From Octopus sinensis (Eukaryota), in assembly GCF_006345805.1 (NCBI RefSeq), contig NC_043015.1:9300001-9364000 (forward strand): a DNA stretch of 64,000 nucleotides. Reading direction: 5' to 3'. The position numbers were made by a program, and so were the translations under genes. The notes under the pieces were generated by a model. That model saw only the letters and a program-made list of their open reading frames with translations. It was not told where the DNA came from and did not search any database. Positions 9,179 to 55,705 of this stretch are shown in pieces (positions within the stretch are counted from its first letter, which is position 1; each line of letters starts with the position of its first letter).

Positions 9179-9410
9179 TAGTTTTATTTTTATAGCGTGC
9201 TTTCACTTCACTACCGAGCGCAGCTCTGTGTGCCTTGGGTATGTGCTGTGATTTGTTGTGATGCTCTGATTGTTATTGTATTTAAAGTGTTCTGCGTAGG
9301 ATGTGTGCAGTGCCTAGTAGTGCAATTTTCTGTATGTTATATGTGTTTGTAAGTCCTGGTGTTTTTGTTATGTATTTGTCTGAATATTTTTTATCATGCC
9401 TAATGCACCT
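9176..9410 (-). mobile_element. R4/Dong-type LINE 3' end (235 bp), copy 1
   Basis: Encodes ...KYITKTPGLTNTYNIQKIALLGTAHILRRTL* plus a 3' UTR nearly identical to 54560-54779. Lies in (TTA)n. Confidence 0.9.
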
Positions 9411-9429
9411 ATTATTATTATTATTATTA

Positions 9430-9476
<47 letters not shown>

Positions 9477-9495
9477 TATTATTATTATTATTATT

Positions 9496-9729
9496 CAGTA
9501 GTTTTATTTTTATAGCGTGCTTTCACTTCACTACCGAGCGCAGCTGTGTGTGCCTTGGGTATGTGCTGTGATTTGTTGTGATGCTCTGATTGTTATTGTA
9601 TTTAAAGTGTTCTGCGTAGGATGTGTGCAGTGCCTAGTAGTGCAATTTTCTGTATGTTATATGTGTTTGTAAGTCCTGGTGTTTTTGTTATGTATTTGTC
9701 TGAATATTTTTTATCATGCCTAATGCACC

Positions 9730-11193: not shown

Positions 11194-13100
11194 TTACCTC
11201 CTGATTTTGTGAATCTTATTAAGCTTGCAGAGTTTCGTAATAAACAATGTTTTTGGTCTCTCCCTGTGGGGCATAAAGAAACAAATGAGTTGGATTGAGC
11301 ATCGTCCATAAAGTTGGTCACGAGAGAAAACTGTTACCGCAAGGTGCAGAACAACCACATCGAAGGACTGCACTTGGAGCCTGTTAATGCTAACTGCAAA
11401 GCTCAGTTTCAACGCGAATTGCTGGTGCTTGCACTGGAAAGGCACATCCGAGGGAATAAGTGGAATTCTAGAAAAGAATACAAATCACCGCTTGTTTTTC
11501 CAGTCAGAATTGTTCTCTCCAAACTGTTAGAATCATCTTTATTATAAGTCGTGTGCCATTCCAAAGTTTGGTGGATCGAGGTTTCGAAGAAGCATAACTG
11601 GTGCCCCAATATTGAGGTGGGATGCTGGGTGGCGTTAGACGATCCAAGAATTCAACTGAATAATTCACAGCTTCATCGATGTTGAATACAGAGTTTGTGG
11701 AATTGTACAGGTGACGCTCACCTGGCAAATGTATCAGAGTTTTGATGTTCAAATCATCAACTGTCACATTATTTCGAGTTCAAACGAGACGGGTTTTCAA
11801 CCAGTTGTGGCCTGTGAACTGATTCCTCCGGTTAGAAAACATCTTATTCATTAGATCCTTTAAATCATATACCATATGTCCAAAAGGCGAGCTTACCGAC
11901 CATCTTTCTCGCTAACTGAAGTGCGATTACCGACGTCCAAAGAGATTTTGAAACAGGAATGTGCGGCCACCACTTAGAAGGTATTCCACCTGGGGCCACT
12001 GATATGGTAATGTGTGCAAATGGGTTTAATTTGGCCCAGATTAGCCAGAAGAATATTGATGACAAATGTCTTGCCCGTTCCACCTGGTGCATCCCGAAAG
12101 AAAAGACCTCCACTTTCACTTTCAATGCTCGAAATAATGGTCTTATAAACACTCAGTTGATCCTCCATCAGTTTGTGCTCGTTATAAGCTGCATTCACCG
12201 TCGTTTTTCCGGTATCGTAGCCGATTGCCCGCAAGTACTGAATGGCGAGATTGTTTACTTCTTGCTCCCGTTGAGGTAGACCAAATGTGGCAATTTCTTT
12301 GTCTCCATAGCTTTCATTCGGGTTTCCATGTCAGGCAATGCTTCCTTATAAAGGGCGTTATTGAACCTGGTAATTTTTGTTGAGGTTTGCCTTTGAATCC
12401 TTTGTAGGGTATCTTCTGTCATGCTGGTTTTGTGGGTCGCCTTTGGCGAAGTCTTCTCTGTAGTGTGTTTTCCATGGTTTGACCTTGTGCGGCATTTGAC
12501 GCAGAAAGAAGCAATCCTGCTGATTAGAGTGTACGCCCACCCGATGGCACCATTTCAGGTGGCAACACGGTTTTCTTAGCCCTTGCGTCTGTTCCATTTA
12601 TTGTGTGCCCAAGTATAGTACATGAGAATCTAAAAATATAAGCGTTCGAGCAAACGTAACGCATTCGCATAATTTGAAGAAAGCTGTCAAAATGGTTTCT
12701 GATGCATTCAGTACAACGTTTCGAGCATTTTCTTCTGTGAAATAAACACACTGAATATTTTCAAGAAATACAAATATATTCAACAGTGCTGGATGCTGCT
12801 CGTGGATTTCGAAGCCATTGTTAGAGGAGCTATAACTGCTCAACTTATATTCCTGAATTTCATCTGCCTTCCTGACCTCCTGTTCAAGTCCAAAACCCAC
12901 CATATCTTAGCACTTATTGCTCTTATTAATATTTTTGCGAACTTATTTAATATTTTTATTGCGTTGAATAGCTCAACATTAGCATGGGTCTGCAAAATTT
13001 TAGACAGCCATTGGTTCTAGGGCACGATCCACCTATTTTCAATTTCCATCCCTTCACCATTAACTTTGAGCTTGGTAGTTTTTAGGATGATCAAAGGAAA
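11194..13100 (-). mobile_element. Helitron Rep/PIF1-helicase pseudogene
   Basis: Fragments in the expected order: ENRWIVP*NQWLSKILQTHANVE, FEIHEQHP..VYFTEENARNVVLNASETILTAFFKLC, Walker A FFRDAPGGTGKTFVINILLA, SVEFLDRLTPPSIPP, QFALKLSFAVSINRLQVQSF. Many stops and frameshifts. Confidence 0.9.
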
Positions 13101-15547: not shown

Positions 15548-15582
<35 letters not shown>

Positions 15583-15622
15583 ATACATTTATATATACAT
15601 AAATATATATACATCTGTACAT

Positions 15623-15663
<41 letters not shown>

Positions 15664-15991
15664 GAGAGAGAGAGACAGTGAGTGAGAGAAATACAACAGT
15701 AGCAGGACAATTGGATATCGAACTAAAAAACATATATGTGACCATGCTAAATATATTTTCTCCAATGTTGGCCATAAATTACCCCACTTAGACACTTGCT
15801 TGTACACCAGTTTTTAGAATGTAGGACAGAAAATACAAGATACTCAAACAAATCTATTAATGGGAGATGCATTAGATACACCTCATAGACATACACACAT
15901 AATCACAGAAACACACAGTCACACATATGTATAGATATACACATCCACAGATTGAGAGACTATGAGAGAGAAAAAGCGAGAAACTGATAGA

Positions 15992-16006
15992 ATGATAGAT
16001 AGATAA

Positions 16007-16088
<82 letters not shown>

Positions 16089-16098
16089 GATAGATGAA
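15992..16098. repeat. (GATA)n microsatellite
   Basis: Directly visible. Confidence 0.95.
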
Positions 16099-16835: not shown

Positions 16836-16875
<40 letters not shown>

Positions 16876-16931
16876 TGTATATATATATATATATATATGT
16901 CTGTATATATATATATATATATATAGGTATA

Positions 16932-16965
<34 letters not shown>

Positions 16966-16975
16966 AGTATATATA

Positions 16976-17006
<31 letters not shown>

Positions 17007-17026
17007 CATTTATATATATATATATG

Positions 17027-17064
<38 letters not shown>

Positions 17065-17150
17065 TTTATATGTTTATGTATATGTTTATGCGTATATATA
17101 TATATAGGTATATATATGTATATGTATATGTATATATATATGTATATGTA
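16836..17150. repeat. (TA)n/(TATG)n tract, left flank of the ribozyme array
   Basis: Directly visible. Confidence 0.95.
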
Positions 17151-17343
17151 GTAATACTAAGCAATTAAGGGTTTAGCAACGAATTGCCTCACCACACACC
17201 GAATTTAGAAATAGCAGTCAAAGAGTTATAGCTATTCTTTCTACTAAAAGGGAGATCTCAGTAAAAACACAGCACTTGAATGGCAAACACAGACAGGTAA
17301 GAGAGAATGAAATGACGGCAATCTATCATACAATTTTAAGTCA

Positions 17344-17434
17344 CCTACGGACGTACGTTTCGAAATTAAGTTTTAGGAAAGCATAAGAATTAGATAATTA
17401 TATCTTACCCAACTTCTTTTCTCATCAGCGTAGG
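17344..17434 (-). ncRNA. Type I hammerhead ribozyme, intact core
   Basis: Minus strand reads CCTACG-CTGATGA-G[58 nt]C-GAAAC-GTAC-GTC^CGTAGG. Stem I is 6 perfect bp. Stem II starts GAAA/TTTC then AAGTT/AACTT. Stem III lies within the palindrome ACGTACGT. GUC cleavage is predicted between 17350 and 17349. Confidence 0.92.
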
Positions 17435-17927
17435 ACACTACAATTATGAATAATTGTATATTAAATTTCGCGATACTAGAAGGCATCATCTCAACTCAGT
17501 ATCAGAGCGAGCTAAAAGCCGTTACCAGTATCACCAAATTCAAAGTGTGAATGAAAGTTTGTGTCACCAGCCCCCTCCCACCCGCGTGTAGCCAAGACAA
17601 GATGCTGCGGTCATTTACTGGGATGAAATATGGTTATCAGTAACAATATAGGGTGAAATTAATTAATTTGGAATAATTATTACTTACACCAAGTAGATTT
17701 CGGCATGTAAAAGCCTCATGCGAGGAAAAGTTAAGTAATACTAAGCAATTAAGGGTTTAGCAACGAATTGCCTCACCACACACCGAATTTAGAAATAGCA
17801 GTCAAAGAGTTATAGCTATTCTTTCTACTAAAAGGGAGATCTCAGTAAAAACACAGCACTTGAATGGCAAACACAGACAGGTAAGAGAGAATGAAATGAC
17901 GGCAATCTATCATACAATTTTAAGTCA

Positions 17928-18018
17928 CCTACGGACGTACGTTTCGAAATTAAGTTTTAGGAAAGCATAAGAATTAGATAATTATATCTTACCCAACTTC
18001 TTTTCTCATCAGCGTAGG
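17928..18018 (-). ncRNA. Type I hammerhead ribozyme, intact core (second unit)
   Basis: Identical to 17344-17434. Predicted cleavage between 17934 and 17933. Confidence 0.92.
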
Positions 18019-18524
18019 ACACTACAATTATGAATAATTGTATATTAAATTTCGCGATACTAGAAGGCATCATCTCAACTCAGTATCAGAGCGAGCTAAA
18101 AGCCGTTACCAGTATCACCAAATTCAAAGTGTGAATGAAAGTTTGTGTCACCAGCCCCCTCCCACCCGCGTGTAGCCAAGACAAGATGCTGCGGTCATTT
18201 ACTGGGATGAAATATGGTTATCAGTAACAATATAGGGTGAAATTAATTATTTGGAATAATTATTACTTACACCAAGTAGATTTCGGCATGTAAAAGCCTC
18301 ATGCGAGGAAAAGTTAAGTAATACTAAGCAATTAAGGGTTTAGCAACGAATTGCCTCACCACACACCGAATTTAGAAATAGCAGTCAAAGAGTTATAGCT
18401 ATTCTTTCTACTAAAAGGGAGATCTCAGTAAAAACACAGCACTTGAATGGCAAACACAGACAGGTAAGAGAGAATTAAATGACGGCAATCTATCATACAA
18501 GTTTAAGTCACCTACGGACGTACG

Positions 18525-18526
<2 letters not shown>

Positions 18527-18619
<93 letters not shown>

Positions 18620-18680
18620 TATATATATATAATATATATATATATATGTATGTATGTGTGTGTGTGTGTTTGTGTGTGTG
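18527..18680. repeat. (TA)n then (TG)n tract, right flank of the array
   Basis: Directly visible. Confidence 0.95.
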
Positions 18681-19199
18681 TATACCTATATTCTATTGTG
18701 AGTGTATTTTGTTAGGCAACCATAATATACTGCAAAGTATATTAATCTTTTTTTTAATTAATACTTTGCTCTACTTTGTCACCAGTGTTTATTATGTCGC
18801 GTGTTGCATTCATGTCTATCGCGTTTGAAAATGATTTCTATTGAAATTACACCCACCACAAAATTTCTTATATTACGTAGTCGATACGTAAACTACAATA
18901 ATGAGATATAAACAATGAGATGTAGCCTAATGTAAACAACAATAATGAGATGAGAGATGAACAAAGGCGATGAGTATATGTTACAGAGAGACCAAAAAAA
19001 TATTGTGTAAATTTTGCGGTAAAAAAAAAATTCGGGGTGAAAAACAAATGTCTGACCGTGTGCCGCGTACACACATTTCCTCTACAGTTTCCATGGGAGG
19101 TAAAAATCTTTGAAATATCGTTTCTACGAAATATGGTTTCGCCAGTTTTGATCGGAAATTTCTCTAACGTATTATGATTAATCTGCAATATCAATTTCT

Positions 19200-22760: not shown

Positions 22761-22820
22761 TATATATACTTATACTTATATATCTGTGTGTATGTGTACG
22801 CATATATATATAAATATATA

Positions 22821-23552
22821 TAAGAAATATTGAATTTCTAAATCTCTCGTAGAGACATGTACGGTGGTGGGGCGATAGAATGGTTGTATACTGTCAATCT
22901 AACAAGAACGTGACAGTAGGGGGTACACCACCGTTGTATAGCTCTAGGAGGCATCGAACGCCTCCTGACAGCTCCGACACATTTTTTCCCTGTGTCCTTA
23001 TATACATATACGAAGGGGAGACAAACACCCCTGGTCGTCGGAACTGCATCTAGGGACACCGTGTTTCAGGATCATTGTCCTTCAGGGAAAAAATGTGTCG
23101 AAGCTGTCAGGAGGCGTTCGATGCCTCCTAGGGCTATACAACGGTGGTGTACCCCCTACTGTCACGTTCTTGTTAGATTGACAGTATACAACCATTCTAT
23201 CGCCCCACCACCGTACATGTCTCTACGAGAGATTTAGAATTTCAATATTTCTTATTGAATAAACTTCACTGAGTTTACATATATACAGATACGAAGTCTA
23301 GGCAAATATCAACAGCCGACCGGTGTCTGCTACTTTAGGCCGATGAAGGACAATGATCCCGAAAAACGGTGTCCCTAGATGCAGTTCCGACGGCCGGGGG
23401 TGTTTGTCTCCCCTTCGTATATGTATATAAGGACACAGGAAAAAATGTGTCGAAGCTGTCAGGAGGCGTTCGATGCCTCCTAGGGCTATACAACGGTGGT
23501 GTACCCCCTACTGTCACGTTCTTGTTAGATTGACAGTATACAACCATTCTAT
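22821..23552. repeat. Compound inverted duplication A-B-A'-C-B'-A'' (Penelope pLTR-like)
   Basis: A 22821-22991 and A' 23084-23254 are 171-bp inverted arms with 3 mismatches seen. B 22992-23083 is inverted at about 23345-23436, followed by a partial A' to 23552. Confidence 0.92.
23336..23377 (+). ncRNA. Minimal type I hammerhead motif with U4>C core change
   Basis: TAGG-CCGATGA-AGGA-CAATGA-TCCC-GAAA-AACGGT-GTC^CCTA. The inverted sister copy (23051-23083) reads GAAGGA-CAATGA-TCCT-GAAAC-ACGGT-GTC-CCTA but is cut inside the core. Confidence 0.7.
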
Positions 23553-32318: not shown

Positions 32319-32700
32319 TTAGGCATTTGGATTTGTGGTAGAATTTGAATGTGGGAAAAAGCGGTGGTTGCATGTGCTTAGTACCTCATTATGTTTATTT
32401 AGCAGTGATCGAGAATTGTGCTTTGATATGTGAAGTACCTCCTTCAGGCAAGGTTTGCAGGTTAAGATATATTCCGAGATATTACAATCCTCCGTACCCA
32501 TTTGCTTTATAGTGGTTAGATGAAGGAGTTGAACACCAGTGCTATCCACTTTCCTATTCTACTGCATTTCCAAAATGGTGCATTTGACAAAGGCGAAGGC
32601 AATTCTGATGTCCCGTGAGAAAATTCCGATAGTTACGTTAAGGATTGCAATTTGTCTTCAGTGGTATCATAGAATTTAATATTATCAATAAAAAGTAAGT
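32319..32700 (-). mobile_element. Penelope-like element, GIY-YIG endonuclease C-terminal relic
   Basis: ORF 32319-32549 contains CKPCLKEVLHISKHNSRSLLNKHNEVLSTCNHR, matching the PLE terminal pattern C..CL.EK..I.....LLNKR.E..S.CRH. Confidence 0.75.
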
Positions 32701-33339
32701 GATCTTCGGCTAGCTTATAACCTGTGTTCTTTTCCCTCAGGTTCAAGGTCAGTGTTCTCCTGACAAACAGAAATGGGCACACAGTATTATCCTGAAATAT
32801 AACACCTCTTAGTCGCTAATTCCCCTGATATTGAAATGGTTCTCCAGCGTCTCATGCTGGAGAACTTATTAGGAAGTGATACGTTGTTAGGCGCAACATT
32901 AATCATATCTATACTCATCAGCATCCATGAACGTGCGCCACGGGATAGTCTAATCAAGCAGTGGATATGTTTGTTATTCGCTTCTTGCAATTCTTCATCA
33001 TTTATTTTCATTATTGTTATTAAGAATTTCTTTCTTATTTCGATTTTGTTTCAGTTTCTTGCCGAACGTCTTCTCGAATCATGTGGCAAAGAAAGTCACT
33101 AAATGCATCAATATGAAATTAAACTAAGCACGTCAGATGTTTCTTCCTCACAATGAAAAGAAGTTATGTGAAAAAAATGTGCGGTGATCGTTGTCACATC
33201 GGCCATACCCTTTTTAATACAAGTATCATACCAGTTAAAACAATATTTTCCGCTGCTTGCAGGTATTGTATGCGAGGGATCATTCACAAAGAATTTGCAG
33301 TTTCTTGTATTCATTCTTAGTGATACTATAACCATATTA

Positions 33340-34000
33340 ATTTAACGCGTTTTTATGTTTTAATGAACTAACCTTTATATTTTCCGAACTTTTCAATTCA
33401 TTTTCACCTGATAATTTGGTCACCAGAAATACTCATGTCGATTAATAAACAAACTGTGTTCTTTGGTCTTTCAAAAAACAATTCTGCACATTTGCTTTCA
33501 TTGTTTGGTCTCTATCAAATTGAACGTCTCAAAAGACGATACATTTTCATCCTAAATTACAACGACAGGGATGTGATTATGCCACTTGTCGGCAATTTGG
33601 AATTTATAATGCCGATATATTAACCACTGTAGATATCGGTAAACAATATGAAGTTTGGATCTACATTCCTCCGATTCTAAAATTTCACATCCAGAGATTA
33701 GGTGACCCACTCTTTTGGATCTACTGCATTTTTCACCATTTTTTCTTAGTAGTTCCAGCCAATGTATTTCGACTTTGAGAAGATAAGATAAAAACTTCGC
33801 TATCTGCCTTTATCCATGATCACCTTAGCTTCTGAGGGGTATGCTTCTGGTCCATATGAACATTTTTATTATGGGTCTTATATCTAGCACGAAGTGGTTT
33901 TTGCCTGATCTATCAACCAACGCTCATAATCATACTTCGCCATGAACTTGCTCTTCTTTGCAACAACAATTGCCTTAACTCAGGTTATCATACACCAGAT
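33340..34000 (-). mobile_element. R4/Dong-type RLE LINE relic
   Basis: KCSRSKRVGHLISGCEILESEEC...YLQWLIYRHYKFQIADKWHNHIP corresponds to the CCHC knuckle and RLE lead-in. Adjacent to (TTA)n at 34020. Confidence 0.75.
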
Positions 34001-45194: not shown

Positions 45195-48100
45195 AAAATA
45201 AACCTGCTACGCATGCAAGACTCCACGACCTCCAGCAAAACCTGTGATAAAGAGAAGACAATAAGAATGATAATAATTTTTGGAATTACTGAGCAGAGAT
45301 CATGTGACGAAGGAAGAGCGTTACGAACCAATTTGTGGATAACAGAATTAGACCCAGAAGAGTTTAACTAAAGGATATCGTGTAATACTGGGCATACAAT
45401 ATACTAAATTTGTATACTGGAAGATATGGAGCAATTGCTCAGAGGAATATACTAACGTGAATTGTGAGAGTATCGAGATCAATGACTACCAAAAGAATTA
45501 ATAATACACATGATTTAGGATATATTAAATGCGGAAGGCACATAATTTTTGTGCAGCTTTAGGAAGGCTAACCAATGGAAACTAAATCAGAAAAGAAGTA
45601 AAGTCAATAATGTATTGAGACACATTGAAAGAAAGAACATAACATAAACATATAATGTCAACAATGTTGCAAGTAGGATTACAGAAGAAAGAATGGGATT
45701 GAGATCTACTGAGAACAGAACATTGAGGGGTAGAAGAGGAAATAAACAATCTTGGTGGATAGGGTGAAATTCAGAAAATATGAACTCACTGAACAATGCC
45801 GTGTCAATATTTGTCCGGAAAAGAAAAAGAAAACTGATGAATGATCGTAAATTCGAAAAAGGGAGAAACAAGTATGTCGGAGATACAAAAGGCCTGCAAA
45901 TTGTTATGGAAGATCCGAAGTATTTCATATTTACAAAAAAACAAAAGTAACAAGGTGTGAACAATGGATTATGTAATACCGTCAAAACACATTGTTTAGG
46001 ACAGAACAAAAATATTTGATCAAGAGATTAATGATGATAAAGAACGTGAAAGATTAACTGATGATAGAGCATCTGAATGGCCCTGCAGCCTACAGCAAAC
46101 ACCTTCTGATGCCCAGCAGGAGAGCATCCACTCCACAGAACACTATCAGAAATATGAGTAAAAGTATAAGCGATTGGGATGCAGCAGGTCCTGACGGTGT
46201 ACAGGGATTTTGGATGAAAATGTGCAGAAGATACCAGCAATTGATCGCAGAGCAACATAATGCATTGATCGATGGAGAATAAATCTCGTGCTGATTGGAA
46301 AAAGGACGAACGGTGTTTTGGCTGAAGGATGCATCAAAAGGAAATGCTGCTGACGATTACTGGCCAGTTTCTTGAATCCTAACGTGGAGGTTACTGTTAA
46401 GAGGAAGTGTAGAACTACGTATTTCTTGATGAGAACGATATGTTTGCAACGGAACAAAACGTTTGTAGAAGGAAATGCAGAGGTACCAAAGATGAATTAT
46501 TGATAAAGAAACAGGCAATGCAAGATTGTAAACGAAGGAGAACTAATTTGGAAATGGTCTGGATTGAATATTGCAAAGCTTGTGATATGATTTCACATTT
46601 GTGGATAATTGAGTGTCTAGGTGTTTGGAATTGCAAGGAATGTAACGTATTCCCTTGAGGGAAGTAATGTGGGATGTAAAACGGAGTTGATAACCTACGG
46701 TAAAAGTGTTTTGCACCCTGGGCATCACAAGAGAGAGTTTCGAGAGTGATAGTATATCACCATTACTTTTTGTTCTCTGCATGATCCCTCTGATGTTGGT
46801 GCTTAGAAAAATGAACATGGAATACCATTTATAGGGCAACTCTCAATCAATCAACCCCCTCATCTTCGTGGATGGTTTGAAGCTGTATGGCAAAGATGAG
46901 GCACGAGTGAGTTACTTGGTCAACAGGGTCCACTGTTTTAGTGCTGATATTAGAATTGAATTTGGACTCAAGAGGTGTGGAATACTGTACCAGAAAAGAC
47001 GCATGGTACAGTTCCTAGCAGGGATAGAACTGACCAATAGAGAATTGATTAAACAAACAGAAACATAAGGCTACACATACCTTCAACAAGATAATAGAGA
47101 AGGAAATGAAAGAGCGACTGACATGGGAACATTTTCGAAAACTAAGTTGCTACATGGGTGATAGCATCACTTCGGTATGGAGCTAAAATAATAAACTGGC
47201 AAATGAAATAACTGCTTAACTTGGATACGAAGAGAGGGAAAATGCTGACAGCACACGAAACATTCCTAACAGTGACACCGATAGGCTGGACTTGTCCTGA
47301 AGTGAAGGTGGGAGATGTTTAATCAGTTTCCGGATTCTATCGTAGGAGGGGGATACAATTTAGAGTGGTATGTACAAAATGCGGTGGAACCACTGTTGAA
47401 ACATGTGACGAAGACCGGCGTCATTAAAACTGATAATTGTGTAAAGCAACATTAAACAAAAAGAAATGGCATGGAAGGAAAAATATAACGCAGGGTCAGT
47501 TTGCAAGAGACTTGATCGCCAAGACTGATATGGAAGTCCGGTGGCTATGAATGAGGAGGAATGACCAGAAGATAGAGAGAGAATCACTTATATTCACATC
47601 TCGAGACAATCAATAACGACTATGTGATATACAAAATCAACAACACTACTGACAGCGACGAATGAATAATGTGTGGTGAGAGGGGTGAAACAGTATGCCA
47701 CATCGTTAGCGAATACCTGAAATAGACACATCGCGAATACAAAAGACGACGTGAAAATGTGACAAGAATGATCCACAGGAAGCTCTGTGAAAATCACGGC
47801 CTAGAAATAAATTTTAAAAAAGGCGTGCTATGAGCGAGCACCAGAAGGAGTCAACGAAAAGGAAGATTGCAAAATCATGTAGGATGCAATGTTTCAGTGC
47901 GATCAACTATCCAGACATCGGAAACGGGTCATTGTTGTGGTGAATAAAGATGAAAGAACATGCATGATAATCGACATAGCATGTCATGGTGAAAAGAGGA
48001 TCAAAAAGAGAGAAGAAAAACAGAACTACGGCGATTTGAGGTGGGAAATACGAAATGTATGATCAATGAGGAGAGTAGACTCGGTACCAATAGTAATTGG

Positions 48101-48330
48101 AGCACTTGGAAATATCAGCAGTCAACTAACATCGTGGATCAAAACTATTGCTACAAATGGGAAGGTAGATCACATTTTTAAAAAATCAGCATTGCTTGGA
48201 AACGCAAGGATACGTACTTCGCAGTGTTCTTCAAGCTTCGCCAGTTAGGAAGTAAAATCTTAGTCCGCTGGCTGTGGACAGCTGAAACTTTCCATCGTAT
48301 TCGGCAAAATAAGCTGTGAGATTTCATTAA
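45195..48330 (+). mobile_element. R4/Dong-type RLE non-LTR retrotransposon, long decayed copy
   Basis: [54 protein letters not shown] (RT), then CCHC/RH region, IIDIAC, VPIVIGALG, KSALLGNARI. Flanked by (AAT)n. Confidence 0.9.
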
Positions 48331-50664: not shown

Positions 50665-51795
50665 CACGCAATGACAATGTATGGTGCCATCCACGCTAAG
50701 GCAAATGTAAACAGGCTCTACGTGAAGAGTGTAAAAGTGTATGTGGGTTGATTAGCGTACGGGAGTACATCACCAGTGAAAGAAAAAACATGGCAGAATA
50801 TTGGGCAAACAGCAAACATGAGCTGCTGCAGTAGGCTGCTAATGCAGAAGGCATTATCATAAATGGACGTGACAACGCTCGTGAATTCCGATCAAGAACA
50901 TGCAACGAGAGAGAATAAACTCTATTCCGCGTGAAATTACCTGGTCATTTCCACCGTGAAACCAACAAATTAAAAGAACAGGAAGCATCACCAAGGTGCT
51001 TTAACAAGGGTGGCCTAAAAAAGAATATTGAAAGGATAATCATCGCTGCCCAGGACATGGCATTGAATACCAGCAGAGTGTAAAAAAGGACTTATACCAC
51101 ATAAATGCAACGGACCTCTGAAGAATATGTATGAAGAGAGTTGAAAGCATGACTCACATTGTTAGTAATTGTGAAAGTCTTGCGCAGAAAGAGTACAAGC
51201 GTATCACGACAAGGTAGCCCCAAACCTCCACTGGTTGCAATGCCGTAAGTATGGAGATATGAGGTTACAGGTGCTTGTTACCAACATAGAGCAGAAAAGG
51301 TAATGGGCGAAAATGGGAAGGCAAAAACCTCTGGGACCTTGACATCTCGACAGACAAGAGATTAGAGCCCCGAAGGAATGATATAATAACCTTTAGCAGA
51401 GACAAACAAGAGTGCCTAATAATTGACGTGGCAGCGGCAGGAGATCAAAATATCATCATGAAAGAAATATAAGCGATTGATAAATATTGGAGACCTGAGA
51501 ATTGAGATCGTTAAAATATGAGAGCTACGAGTGTCAAATATAAAGTTTATCCCTATTGTTATCGTTGCATTGGGTTCAATACCACCTAACCTGAAAAAGA
51601 GGAACAACTGAAAACATTAAAATTACCATACAGTCTAGATATATTGCAAAAATCGGCATTACTTGGAACTGCATGCATATTGCGTAAAGTACTGTGTGTC
51701 TGAGGTACTTGTGATTTGACACACAGTACAAACATTAGTAGACACAGTATCTTCGATAAACAAATTCACGACAGTGTATAATGTGCGACATCTAT
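50665..51795 (+). mobile_element. R4/Dong-type LINE, 5'-truncated decayed copy (distinct 3' UTR)
   Basis: MTMYGAIHAKANVNRLYVK, THIVSNCESLAQKEYKR, CLIIDVA, FIPIVIVALG, QKSALLGTACILRKVL. Followed by (AAT)n. Confidence 0.88.
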
Positions 51796-52499: not shown

Positions 52500-52590
52500 A
52501 ATAATAATAATAATAATAATATAATAATAATAATAATAATAATATAATAGATAATAATAATAATAATAATAATAAAATAATAATAATAAT

Positions 52591-53711
52591 ACGGCTGTAA
52601 AGATCAACTAATGATCAATAAAGCCATAACTGAAGACAGCCACAAAAAGAAGAAAGGCCTCAGTATGACATGGATCGACTACAGATCCATGCCATCCATG
52701 CCATGTGTGGAGGATGCGTTTTATAGCATCCTCCACACATGGATCCGTGAAACACTAGCCATGAACAAAGTAGCACCAACAATTATAAAATACATAGGAC
52801 ACTATGAATAAATGGCAAACAGTGCTACAGCTCCAAACAAAAGAGGGACTCATGAAAACCAAAGCCATCCCCATTAGAAGAGGAATATTCCAGGGAGACA
52901 CACTCTCTTCACTCCTTTTCTGCTTGGCATTGTCACCTCTATCTGATATGCTAAATAGAACTGGATGCGGATATAAATGTTACGGCAAAATGATCAGCCA
53001 CCTTTTATATATGGATGACCTAAAACTATACGCTGCGAATGACAAACAGCTGGAAATACTACTAAAGGCAGTTCATAGATTTACCAAAGAAATTGTTATG
53101 AAATTTGGATTTAAAAAATGCGCCAAAGTAACCATGAAAAGAGGAAAACTATTTAAGAGTAACAACATCACACTAGATAAAACCAATGGAATAAAAGATT
53201 TAGACGAAAGCCAAACTTAAAAATACTTAGGATTCCGTGAACTAGATAAGACACAACACACACAAATGAAAGAGAACATAAAAAAAGAATATTATAGAGG
53301 AGTTAGATCAATACTAAAAACAGAGCTCAAAGTTAAAAACAAGATGATAGGTATTAACACTATAGTCGTCCCAGTTATAAGTTACAGCTACAATATCCTT
53401 AAGTGGACACTAAATGAACTGACCAAAATAGATAGGAAAACAAGAAAAATAACGACAGGATCTAGGATGCATCACCCCAAATCTGACATAGAAAGACTAT
53501 ATATACAACGTATAGAAGGTGGTATAGGCCTTATACAGCTGGAAAACTACTATAAAATAACCACCATAGGACTGCAAAAATATATACTTCAGAAGAAAGG
53601 AAAACTGATACAAATAGCGGCAAAACACGAGCAAAGAAAAAAAAACTGTTCTCAGTATTTAAGGAAGCTGACAAATACAAACAAGAAATCATACCACCTA
53701 ACAAATATGAA

Positions 53712-53746
<35 letters not shown>

Positions 53747-54779
53747 AGAAGAAGAAGAAGAAGAAGAAGAAGAAGAAGAAGATGAAGAAGAAGAAGAAAC
53801 AACAAAAGCTATAAAACAAATGAAATCCAAACTTAATCTAGAACAGCAACAATCCATGATAAAACGATGGCAAGAAAAGCCCCTTCATGGCAAATACTGG
53901 ACTAAACTAAATGCAACGGTTGCGACGCTGAGGACTCAAAGCAGAGGCAGCACAAGACCAAAGCCTCCCCACCAGAAATTACCAAAGACATGTAATGAAA
54001 AGAAATATAACTAGTAACTGCAGAATATGTGGAGATGGACAAGAAACAATAAATCATATTATCTCTGGCTTCCCAGTCCTGGCTAAGAAGGAATATATTC
54101 ACAGACACGACAGAGGTGGGATCTATATACACTGGAAGCCATGCCAACATTATGGAATAACAACAGAAAAAAGATGCTATATTCACACACCAGCAAAGGT
54201 CACAGAAAACAAGAAAGCAACAATACTCTGGGATATGCCGATACACACAGATAGAGAAATTAAGGCCAACAGACCAGATATAGTTGTCAGAGATCATGAA
54301 GAAAAACATGCTTTCTAATTGACGTATCAATACCAGCAGATGACAACGTGTCTCTAAAAGAAATGGAAAAACTTTCAAAATACAAAGACCTGGAAATAGA
54401 GGTAGCCAGAGTGTTGAATCTAAAAACAGAAACAATTTCTATCATGAAACCAAATGAAATCCAAACTTAATCTAGAACAGCAACAAACCATGATAAAACG
54501 ATGGCAAGAAAAGCAAATACTGGACTAAACTAAATGCAAAAGAAATACTCAAAGTCATGATAAAAAATATTCAGACAAATACATAACACAAACACCAGGA
54601 CTTACAAACACATATAACATACAGAAAATTGCTATACTAGGCACGGCACACATCCTACGCTGAAGACTTTCCATACAATAACCATCAGAGCATCACAACA
54701 AATCACGTCACATACCCAAGGCACACAGAGCTGCGCTCGGTAGTGAAGTGTAAGCACGCTATAAAAATAAAACTAGAGA
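52591..54779 (+). mobile_element. R4/Dong-type LINE, 5'-truncated, best-preserved copy
   Basis: RRGIFQGDTLSSLLFCLAL and HLLYMDDLKLY (RT), HHPKSDIERLY, WQEKPLHGKYW, CRICGDGQETINHIISG..HRHDR, KANRPDIVVRD (RLE), ALLGTAHIL. Flanked by (AAT)n. Confidence 0.95.
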
Positions 54780-54788
54780 ATAATGATG

Positions 54789-54837
<49 letters not shown>

Positions 54838-54897
54838 CAACAATAATAATAATAATAATAAAAATAATAATAATGATAATGATAATATTGTTAATAT

Positions 54898-54930
<33 letters not shown>

Positions 54931-55119
54931 ATTGTTAATATTAATAATAATAATAATAATCATAATCATAATAATAATAATAATAATGTTGTTGACGACG
55001 ATGATTATAATAATGATAATATTAATATATTAACAGCACTTACTTTGTGAAACTGTGTAAGTATGAGATCATGTAGAATTACACTGCATTTGAAAGAAGC
55101 TTAAATTATCTCTCAATGC

Positions 55120-55705
55120 TGAAGATCTAAGAATTTGATGTGGGATTTTCTATGGTGACGCAGAGTCTCCATTCCTCTTTTGTGTAGCCTTAATACATCT
55201 CACGAAATTGCTCGATGATGTACGGTATGACTACAATGTTTCATAAAAAATATTAACTACCCCTTTTATATGGATGGTTTAAAACTCTTTGCAAAAAATG
55301 AGCAACATTTACACGGCTTACTAGTAATTGCTAAACAGTTCAGTGATGACATCAGGGTGAAACTTGGCCTTGATAAATGTGCAAAATCTACAACTATCAG
55401 AGGAAAAATGATAGAAATAGCCAGCTTTAACCTTGAGCAGCAGAATGTCATAAAGGATTTAGAACAAGCTGAGACCTAGAAACACCTAGGGCTATTTGAA
55501 GGATATGGATTCATACATTCAATGATGAGGGAAAGGATCAGAGAAGAATGTTATCGCGCGGTAAAGGCAATATTCAAGACAGAACTCATTTCAAGATATA
55601 GGATCGAAGCGATCAATAATTTAGCCATATCGACCGTGACATACACTTTCAATATCATTAACTTGACAGAAAAATACGACGGCTATTGACAATGTATAGA
55701 ATATA
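55120..55705 (+). mobile_element. R4/Dong-type RT fragment
   Basis: GIFYGDAESPFLFCVAL and FYMDGLKLFAKNEQHL. Confidence 0.85.

Follow-up and report, generated by a model that had tools for sequence, protein, structure and literature searches.

A tandem type I hammerhead-ribozyme insertion with a long helix II in Octopus sinensis, probably an animal non-LTR retrozyme

The DNA described here is a stretch of 64,000 nucleotides from Octopus sinensis (NCBI RefSeq assembly GCF_006345805.1, contig NC_043015.1, positions 9,300,001 to 9,364,000 of the forward strand). The whole stretch is called the window, and all coordinates count from its first letter. At 17150–18526 the window contains a tandem array of a 583/584-nt unit, present in 2.36 copies arranged head to tail, with the minus strand as the ribozyme sense. 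The array interrupts a (TA)n microsatellite and carries two complete type I hammerhead ribozymes (HHRs). The features of the locus are listed below from left to right, with the minimum free energy (MFE) of the folded monomer given where it applies.

16836–17149, no strand: left part of the split (TA)n microsatellite
17144–17149, no strand: possible target-site duplication (TSD), left copy ATATGT
17150–18526, minus strand: whole insertion, 2.36 units, from direct repeats and BLAST
17150–17349, minus strand: partial unit C, the first 200 nt of the unit, identical to unit B, ending at the 3' end of the insertion
17344–17434, minus strand: complete type I hammerhead 2, 91 nt, identical to hammerhead 1, C17 at 17350
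17362–17421, minus strand: helix II of hammerhead 2, 60 nt (equivalent in hammerhead 1 at 17946–18005)
17350–17933, minus strand: unit B, 584 nt, the monomer between two complete hammerheads, MFE -163.8 kcal/mol, z -5.75
17928–18018, minus strand: complete type I hammerhead 1, 91 nt, C17 at 17934
17934–18516, minus strand: unit A, 583 nt, from cleavage site to cleavage site (5' CGUAGG ... GUC 3')
18517–18526, minus strand: remnant of a third hammerhead at the 5' end of the insertion, AACGTACGTC, ending in C17
18527–18532, no strand: possible TSD, right copy ATATGT
18527–18655, no strand: right part of the same (TA)n microsatellite

The copies start at 17150, 17734 and 18317, and the direct-repeat search gives spacings of 584 and 583 nt. 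When one unit is compared with the 64-kb window by BLAST, it aligns with 17933–17350 at 100% identity, with 18516–17934 at 99.5% and with 17349–17150 (200 nt) at 100%. Unit A differs from unit B by two substitutions and one 1-nt indel, and partial unit C equals B exactly. The insertion is young because there are only three differences, all of them in unit A, in ~783 compared positions. The array was missed by Tandem Repeats Finder, for which the period limit was 500. The GC content of the unit is 37%, compared with 34% for the window. The longest open frame of the circularised unit in six frames is only 69 aa, so the unit is non-coding, and its concatenated open frames have no protein homologues at E ≤0.01 among 5.8 billion proteins. 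A tRNA or short interspersed element (SINE) head was sought around the array and none was found. The first-pass annotation of this DNA had described about 2.36 nearly identical head-to-tail non-coding units, and the direct repeats, the BLAST alignments and the 69-aa longest frame all confirm that description.

The hammerhead motif is located on the minus strand. The pattern CCTACG-CTGATGA-G...C-GAAAC-GTAC-GTC^CGTAGG, in which the caret marks the cleavage site, is found exactly at two sites, 17344–17434 and 17928–18018; these are the motif with all core bases and a 6-bp stem I that had been noted before. In RNA the layout of a full unit is CCUACG-CUGAUGA-(60-nt helix II)-GAA-ACGUACGU-C^CGUAGG. 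The invariant core is complete in both full copies and includes C3 to A9, G12 to A14, the A15.1–U16.1 pair and C17 in the GUC triplet. The G10.1–C11.1 pair is also present in both. In helix I, CCUACG and CGUAGG form a perfect 6-bp duplex that encloses the rest of the unit. Helix II starts with 4 bp (GAAA/UUUC), followed by a 2x2 internal loop and an imperfect A/U-rich hairpin, and the extension past the 4 bp is 52 nt long. Helix III has 2 bp and a GUAC loop, and the entire element ACGUACGU is palindromic. Helix I is open and helices II and III are closed, which is the type I topology. C17 is found at 18517, 17934 and 17350, with spacings of 583 and 584 nt, and the predicted 3' products start at 18516, 17933 and 17349. 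These spacings and 5' ends agree with the coordinates given earlier. The flank interrupts the 5'-most copy, of which AACGUACGUC^CGUAGG is left (in DNA form AACGTACGTC^CGTAGG). This truncated third copy still has the helix III palindrome and the C of the cleavage site but is without CUGAUGA and helix II.

No matches to the gapped motif pattern are expected in shuffled sequences. A custom hammerhead descriptor, applied to both strands of the 64 kb, finds only these two sites. The same descriptor in 100 Markov-1 random windows gives a mean of 0.03 relaxed matches and no match of equal quality. The two sites are one duplicated motif and are counted here as a single event, not two. No ribozyme was found on the plus strand, either with Rfam in 17000–18700 or with the descriptor scan of the window. 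From its sequence, the hammerhead array is real and well preserved, probably a retrozyme insertion, and very probably functional in design.

The monomer is predicted to fold stably in the ribozyme sense. Its MFE of -163.8 kcal/mol is reached by none of 100 dinucleotide shuffles, and the antisense strand has an MFE of only -120.9 kcal/mol (z -1.66). As a circle, the sense strand has an MFE of -159.4 kcal/mol (z -4.9) and is 63% paired. In the unconstrained MFE structure of the monomer, the 5' CGUAGG pairs with CCUACG at 500–505 and encloses a 493-nt branched domain. In the same structure helix II forms, and CUGAUGA and GAAACGUACGUC are single-stranded, so that the scaffold of the hammerhead is laid out on this strand only. 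The monomer is thus predicted to be stable and highly self-paired, with the ribozyme in it free to fold, as is characteristic of retrozymes.

Helix III behaves very differently alone and in a pair. The calculated energy of the helix III hairpin is +2.4 kcal/mol, while that of the ACGUACGU self-duplex is -9.8 kcal/mol. In published work, a weak palindromic helix III makes metazoan type I hammerheads act as double hammerheads in tandem transcripts. Since helix III here is predicted to be unstable alone and stable as a dimer, the ribozyme of the array probably works as a double hammerhead too. In such a dimer, each core would cut the partner copy, acting on its C17 and its helix I 3' strand. A complete substrate strand is present in the truncated copy, so a 5' end at 18516 would be possible in the dimeric mode only. 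The third 5' end in the first-pass annotation is therefore placed at the right coordinate, although the copy that would produce it does not have a catalytic core of its own.

Both ends of the array are flanked by (TA)n, from ~16836 to 17149 on the left and from ~18526 to 18655 on the right, in agreement with the earlier placement of the array in such a repeat. The hexamer ATATGT abuts both array ends and can be extended to 8 bp through ambiguous terminal bases. In the right flank it is unique within the first 117 nt. A TSD of 6–8 bp is plausible. The DNA preserves the GUC|CGUAGG junction intact at all three sites, and the array begins, at its 5' boundary, 8–10 nt upstream of a cleavage site. 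It follows from these two features that the template was uncut or religated: the copied RNA ran on across the cleavage sites, either as a religated circle (2.36 turns) or as an uncut multimer. A cleaved linear monomer as the template is ruled out by the intact junctions. The 3' end of the insertion is 200 nt downstream of the last cleavage site. The sense strand of each unit contains five T4–5 runs and no AATAAA, and the T4–5 runs argue against transcription of multimers by RNA polymerase III (Pol III).

Microsatellites are dense around the array, at 15548–15661, 15986–16095, 16836–17147, 18526–18655 and 18640–18680. They include (AT)n, (GATA)n, long (TA)n with TG interruptions, and (TG)n. Rfam matches to mir-297 and mir-1277 in the (TA)n flanks are far below threshold and were discarded as low-complexity artefacts.

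Short tandem or dispersed repeats with self-processing type I hammerheads include newt satellite 2, which is active as a double hammerhead, and Schistosoma Sm-alpha. Both form satellite or SINE-like families of high copy number, in which the unit is ~330 nt long, whereas one array of 2.36 units is known here. Animal non-LTR retrozymes, which lack long terminal repeats (LTRs), include Mg353 of Mytilus galloprovincialis, Amil224 of Acropora and Ax330/Ax353 of axolotl (PMC7229834). They are tandem repeats with type I HHRs, a GC content below 50%, no LTR, primer-binding site (PBS) or polypurine tract (PPT), TSDs of more than 4 bp and self-paired RNA. The array resembles them in its tandem non-coding units with one type I hammerhead each, its low GC content and its highly self-paired monomer. 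It is likewise non-coding, low in GC and without LTRs, being built of simple head-to-tail units; no specific search was made for a PBS or PPT. The ribozymes are also alike, with a helix I of 6 bp, a helix II of 4 bp and a weak 8–10-nt palindromic helix III that favours dimers. The closest is the ribozyme of the mussel retrozyme, GAAACGCGCGTC^, compared with GAAACGTACGTC^ in the array. In the animal retrozymes, however, the 4-bp helix II is closed by a 5-nt loop, whereas in the array it continues into the 52-nt extension. Outside the ribozyme core there is no sequence similarity between them and the array.

Units of animal retrozymes were reported to be 170–400 nt long (Cervera & de la Pena 2020, PMC7229834), and a 2026 preprint now gives retrozyme consensus lengths of 51–972 bp. 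The earlier remark that 584 nt exceeds the described animal unit sizes is thus out of date. By the operational definition of Li et al. 2026, an active non-LTR retrozyme is a tandem repeat with at least two consecutive complete HHRs and an HHR MFE below -5 kcal/mol. The array has two consecutive complete HHRs 584 nt apart, with an HHR MFE below -5 kcal/mol. Plant LTR retrozymes are similar in that a non-coding RNA bounded by hammerheads is expected to circularise, and the size here, ~600 nt, is close to that of the plant circles. Plant retrozymes differ in having type III ribozymes inside LTRs, PBS/PPT and TSDs of 4 bp. Viroid-like circular RNAs have ribozymes in both polarities and are not encoded in a genome, while the array has them in one polarity only. 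Among cephalopods, 235 Rfam Hammerhead_1 matches are reported for the giant squid, and Penelope-like elements (PLEs) are reported in cephalopod genomes. We found no cephalopod retrozyme in the searchable literature, only this giant squid Hammerhead_1 count.

Taken together, these comparisons lead us to regard the locus as probably a single insertion of an animal non-LTR retrozyme, which is non-coding, non-autonomous and of the type I hammerhead kind. The element matches the known retrozyme class and is unusual in one respect, a long helix II on which standard models fail. The core of the first-pass reading, a tandem non-coding type I hammerhead element copied over more than one unit length into (TA)n, is supported by the sequence criteria.

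We infer a cycle of cleavage, circularisation and rolling-circle reverse transcription for the RNA of the array. The cycle would begin with minus-strand transcription of a tandem copy, in which Pol III is probably not involved in view of the T4–5 runs. Neighbouring ribozymes would then pair through their ACGUACGU palindromes, forming a helix III of 8 bp, and cut after C17, and a host RNA ligase of the tRNA type would circularise the monomer. A helper reverse transcriptase (RT)/endonuclease (EN), most likely that of a PLE with a GIY-YIG nuclease, would nick DNA that is AT-rich or (TA)n. Target-primed reverse transcription would then run more than once round the circle, or along an uncut multimer. 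Arrays made in this way would be tandem with a fractional copy number; their 3' end would be fixed, at unit position 200, and their 5' end truncated at varying points.

Several observations weigh against the retrozyme reading or parts of this cycle. The reading rests on one locus. BLAST finds no further copies of the unit in the 64-kb window beyond the three array segments, and exact-pattern scans find no related copy in Joint Genome Institute (JGI) metagenomes, GTDB genomes or IMG/VR. With Rfam cmscan, no ribozyme match is obtained in the whole window at the gathering threshold, nor a hammerhead in 17000–18700 at E ≤10. A custom model of retrozyme ribozymes also leaves the array sites unmatched at E ≤10. 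No PLE, as the candidate helper, is found in the parts of the window that were screened, namely 31.9–34 kb (three minus-strand frames), ~8.7–22 kb (open frames of at least 45 aa) and ten long open reading frames (ORFs). The helix II hairpin alone is not unusually stable (z -1.08). For the isolated 91-nt motif the MFE is -17.4 kcal/mol when folded freely and -13.8 kcal/mol in the catalytic fold, so that the non-catalytic fold is favoured by 3.6 kcal/mol. As to the possible TSD of 7–8 bp annotated earlier, the ATATGT repeat of 6–8 bp is indeed present at both ends, but random positions in the two flanks agree over 6 nt with P = 0.22. Finally, the circle step may be dispensable, since PLE hammerheads cleave poorly and insertion in vitro needs no cleavage.

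The 18-mer GAAACGTACGTCCGTAGG does occur once in a GC-rich viral (phage) contig, IMGVR_UViG_3300001201_000022, at 2121–2138. There is no upstream CUGAUGA there, and we consider it a chance match.

The failure of the covariance models likely has its cause in the 52-nt extension of helix II. The Rfam hammerhead check proposed with the first-pass annotation was run and left the sites undetected, both at the gathering threshold and at E ≤10. Our custom covariance model was built from four published retrozyme hammerheads (coral, mussel and two from axolotl; PMC7229834 supplement) and run with filters off. All four of these ribozymes have a 4-bp helix II capped by a 5–6-nt loop (PMC7229834). We attribute the missed sites to the 52 extra nucleotides that replace this short loop. 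The top match of the custom model, at 23055–23084 (E 0.15), has a non-canonical core (CUGAAGG); it was judged fortuitous and rejected. In weighing membership of the class, the missing model score stands against every defining feature of the core and helices, all of which are directly present.

PLEs are the nearest relatives in behaviour, and their pseudo-LTRs (pLTRs) carry minimal hammerheads (Cervera & de la Pena 2014, PMC4209133; Craig et al. 2021, PMC8557442; Frangieh et al. 2024, PMC11167929). They share with the array a type I hammerhead that is probably dimeric, partial-tandem insertions, a (TA)n or AT-rich target and a 3' end downstream of the ribozyme. Some PLE clades are reported to prefer (TA)n targets. 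The Anolis PLE is the only one reconstituted in vitro; its nuclease prefers AT-rich DNA, its RT starts inside the RNA ~90 nt downstream of the HHR cut, and ribozyme cleavage is not needed for insertion. In published assays PLE hammerheads cleave poorly in vitro. The corresponding distance from the HHR cut to the 3' end is 200 nt in the array, compared with ~90 nt in the Anolis PLE. The minimal PLE hammerhead has a helix I of 4–5 bp, a helix II of 7–8 bp and an extra unpaired base; the array has 6 bp, a proximal 4 bp and no such base. PLEs have a ~3 kb ORF between their ribozymes, whereas the array has 584 nt of non-coding sequence. BLAST within the window shows neither the 30–40-bp 'tail' of a PLE nor an inverted partial copy at the array. 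In open frames of at least 45 aa across ~8.7–22 kb there is no RVT or GIY-YIG domain, as an autonomous PLE would have.

The first-pass annotation had also pointed to a Penelope relic at 32319 as a candidate helper class, which does not hold. There is no Pfam match in its three frames, and it aligns to RT proteins of the long interspersed element (LINE) type. Its translation weakly resembles the C-terminus of the RT element at 52.6–54.7 kb. In tblastn, 30 homologues of that element match 32484–32827 and 33206–33906, with E values down to 1e-16. These homologues have RVT_1, with or without zf-RVT, and no GIY-YIG, and the relic at 32.5–33.9 kb is therefore LINE-type. Every RT relic found in the screened parts of the window is of this type.

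Among the alternatives, a PLE fragment has to be considered most closely. The 584-nt unit would then be a PLE pseudo-LTR or untranslated region, and the locus a heavily 5'-truncated or ORF-less partial-tandem PLE, not a non-autonomous family of its own. The hammerheads in pLTRs, the partial tandems, the preference for (TA)n or AT-rich DNA and the start of RT past the ribozyme are all PLE traits, and the Xenopus retrozyme consensus is homologous to PLE pLTRs. The ribozymes of the array, however, are 584 nt apart with no RT or EN remnant either between or beside them, where a PLE has its ~3 kb ORF, and the proportions of the ribozyme are those of canonical retrozymes and not those of the minimal PLE hammerhead. 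It is the absence of RT/EN remnants in or beside the array (open frames of at least 45 aa across ~8.7–22 kb) that separates the retrozyme reading from the PLE-derived one, and we consider the latter unlikely. The two are ends of a continuum, because the 2026 preprint derives retrozymes from PLE pLTRs and reports this homology for the Xenopus consensus. It is somewhat less likely again that the array is a local minisatellite, in which 1 or 1.36 copies were inserted and then multiplied by unequal crossing-over or slippage, so that the tandem form would be uninformative on the RNA template. An insertion of 1.36 units already holds a 200-bp direct repeat that is able to misalign, the location of three of three differences in unit A with B equal to C fits a recent duplication of the B/C type, and a satellite-birth model is discussed for retrozymes in the literature. 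The differences are too few for this pattern to carry much weight, however: the chance of finding three of three in unit A is ~0.08. Fractional arrays are normal for retrozyme and PLE insertions, and a minisatellite origin would concern only the copy number and not the identity of the element.

That the motif is inactive or fortuitous, with no cleavage, and the repeat an ordinary satellite or SINE-like element, is very improbable. In favour of it, the covariance models give the motif no score, the long, A/U-rich helix II lacks significant stability, a monomeric helix III would not be stable, and the isolated motif has a better energy in another fold. Yet the invariant core, G10.1–C11.1, GUC, the 6-bp helix I and the palindromic helix III all co-occur, the 100 random windows contain 0 descriptor matches of this quality, and folding of the whole unit yields helices I and II around an unpaired core on this strand only. 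An assembly artefact, in which the array or its copy number is a misassembled repeat inside a microsatellite, seems hardly credible. Repeats within long (TA)n are hard to assemble, but the units differ from each other (two substitutions and one indel) and the flank junctions are clean and in different unit phases.

With the single retrozyme insertion as the preferred reading, the locus has some wider bearing. A clean young insertion with both junctions bears on who mobilises retrozymes and how, and its (TA)n target and a 3' end 200 nt past the ribozyme match measurements for Penelope-like RT. If confirmed as a family, the element would be a further lineage of animal retrozymes. Because standard models miss this ribozyme on account of its long helix II, the hammerheads and retrozymes of animals may be undercounted. 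A more far-reaching idea, which we hold to be possible but doubtful, is that the array represents a young, still-mobile retrozyme family whose 60-nt helix II hides it from both Rfam and models of known retrozymes. If it is true, a whole class of long-helix-II hammerhead retrozymes, with circular RNAs of ~0.6 kb, would have been systematically missed in animals. The missed class could include those of cephalopods, where only Rfam Hammerhead_1 matches were counted. The helix II extension itself might have a function, for instance as a module to which the helper RT or a ligase binds.

Other elements are found elsewhere in the window. Relics of the LINE-type family are located at 52590–54678, 45935–48212, 50937–51700 and 55060–55700 on the plus strand and at 9276–9727 and 32484–33906 on the minus strand. 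The best copy has an RVT_1 match (E 8e-12) and a C-terminal Cys/His module. Homologues of the family are 40–60% identical and come from corals, fish, insects and crustaceans; the closest is P0016, with 60% identity (GCA_024449705.1). At 11977–12330 on the minus strand, an open frame matches a PIF1-like helicase (PF05970, E 4e-6) with the Walker A sequence DAPGGTGKTF and is possibly a relic of the Helitron type. A cluster of inverted and direct repeats at 22820–23552 has 173-nt arms that are 98% complementary and 115-nt direct copies 352 nt apart, and it contains the rejected hammerhead-like partial match at 23055–23084. The long poly-lysine and poly-asparagine open frames at 53650–53820 and 54700–55030 are (AAG)n/(AAA)n and (AAT)n repeats in or beside the LINE copy.

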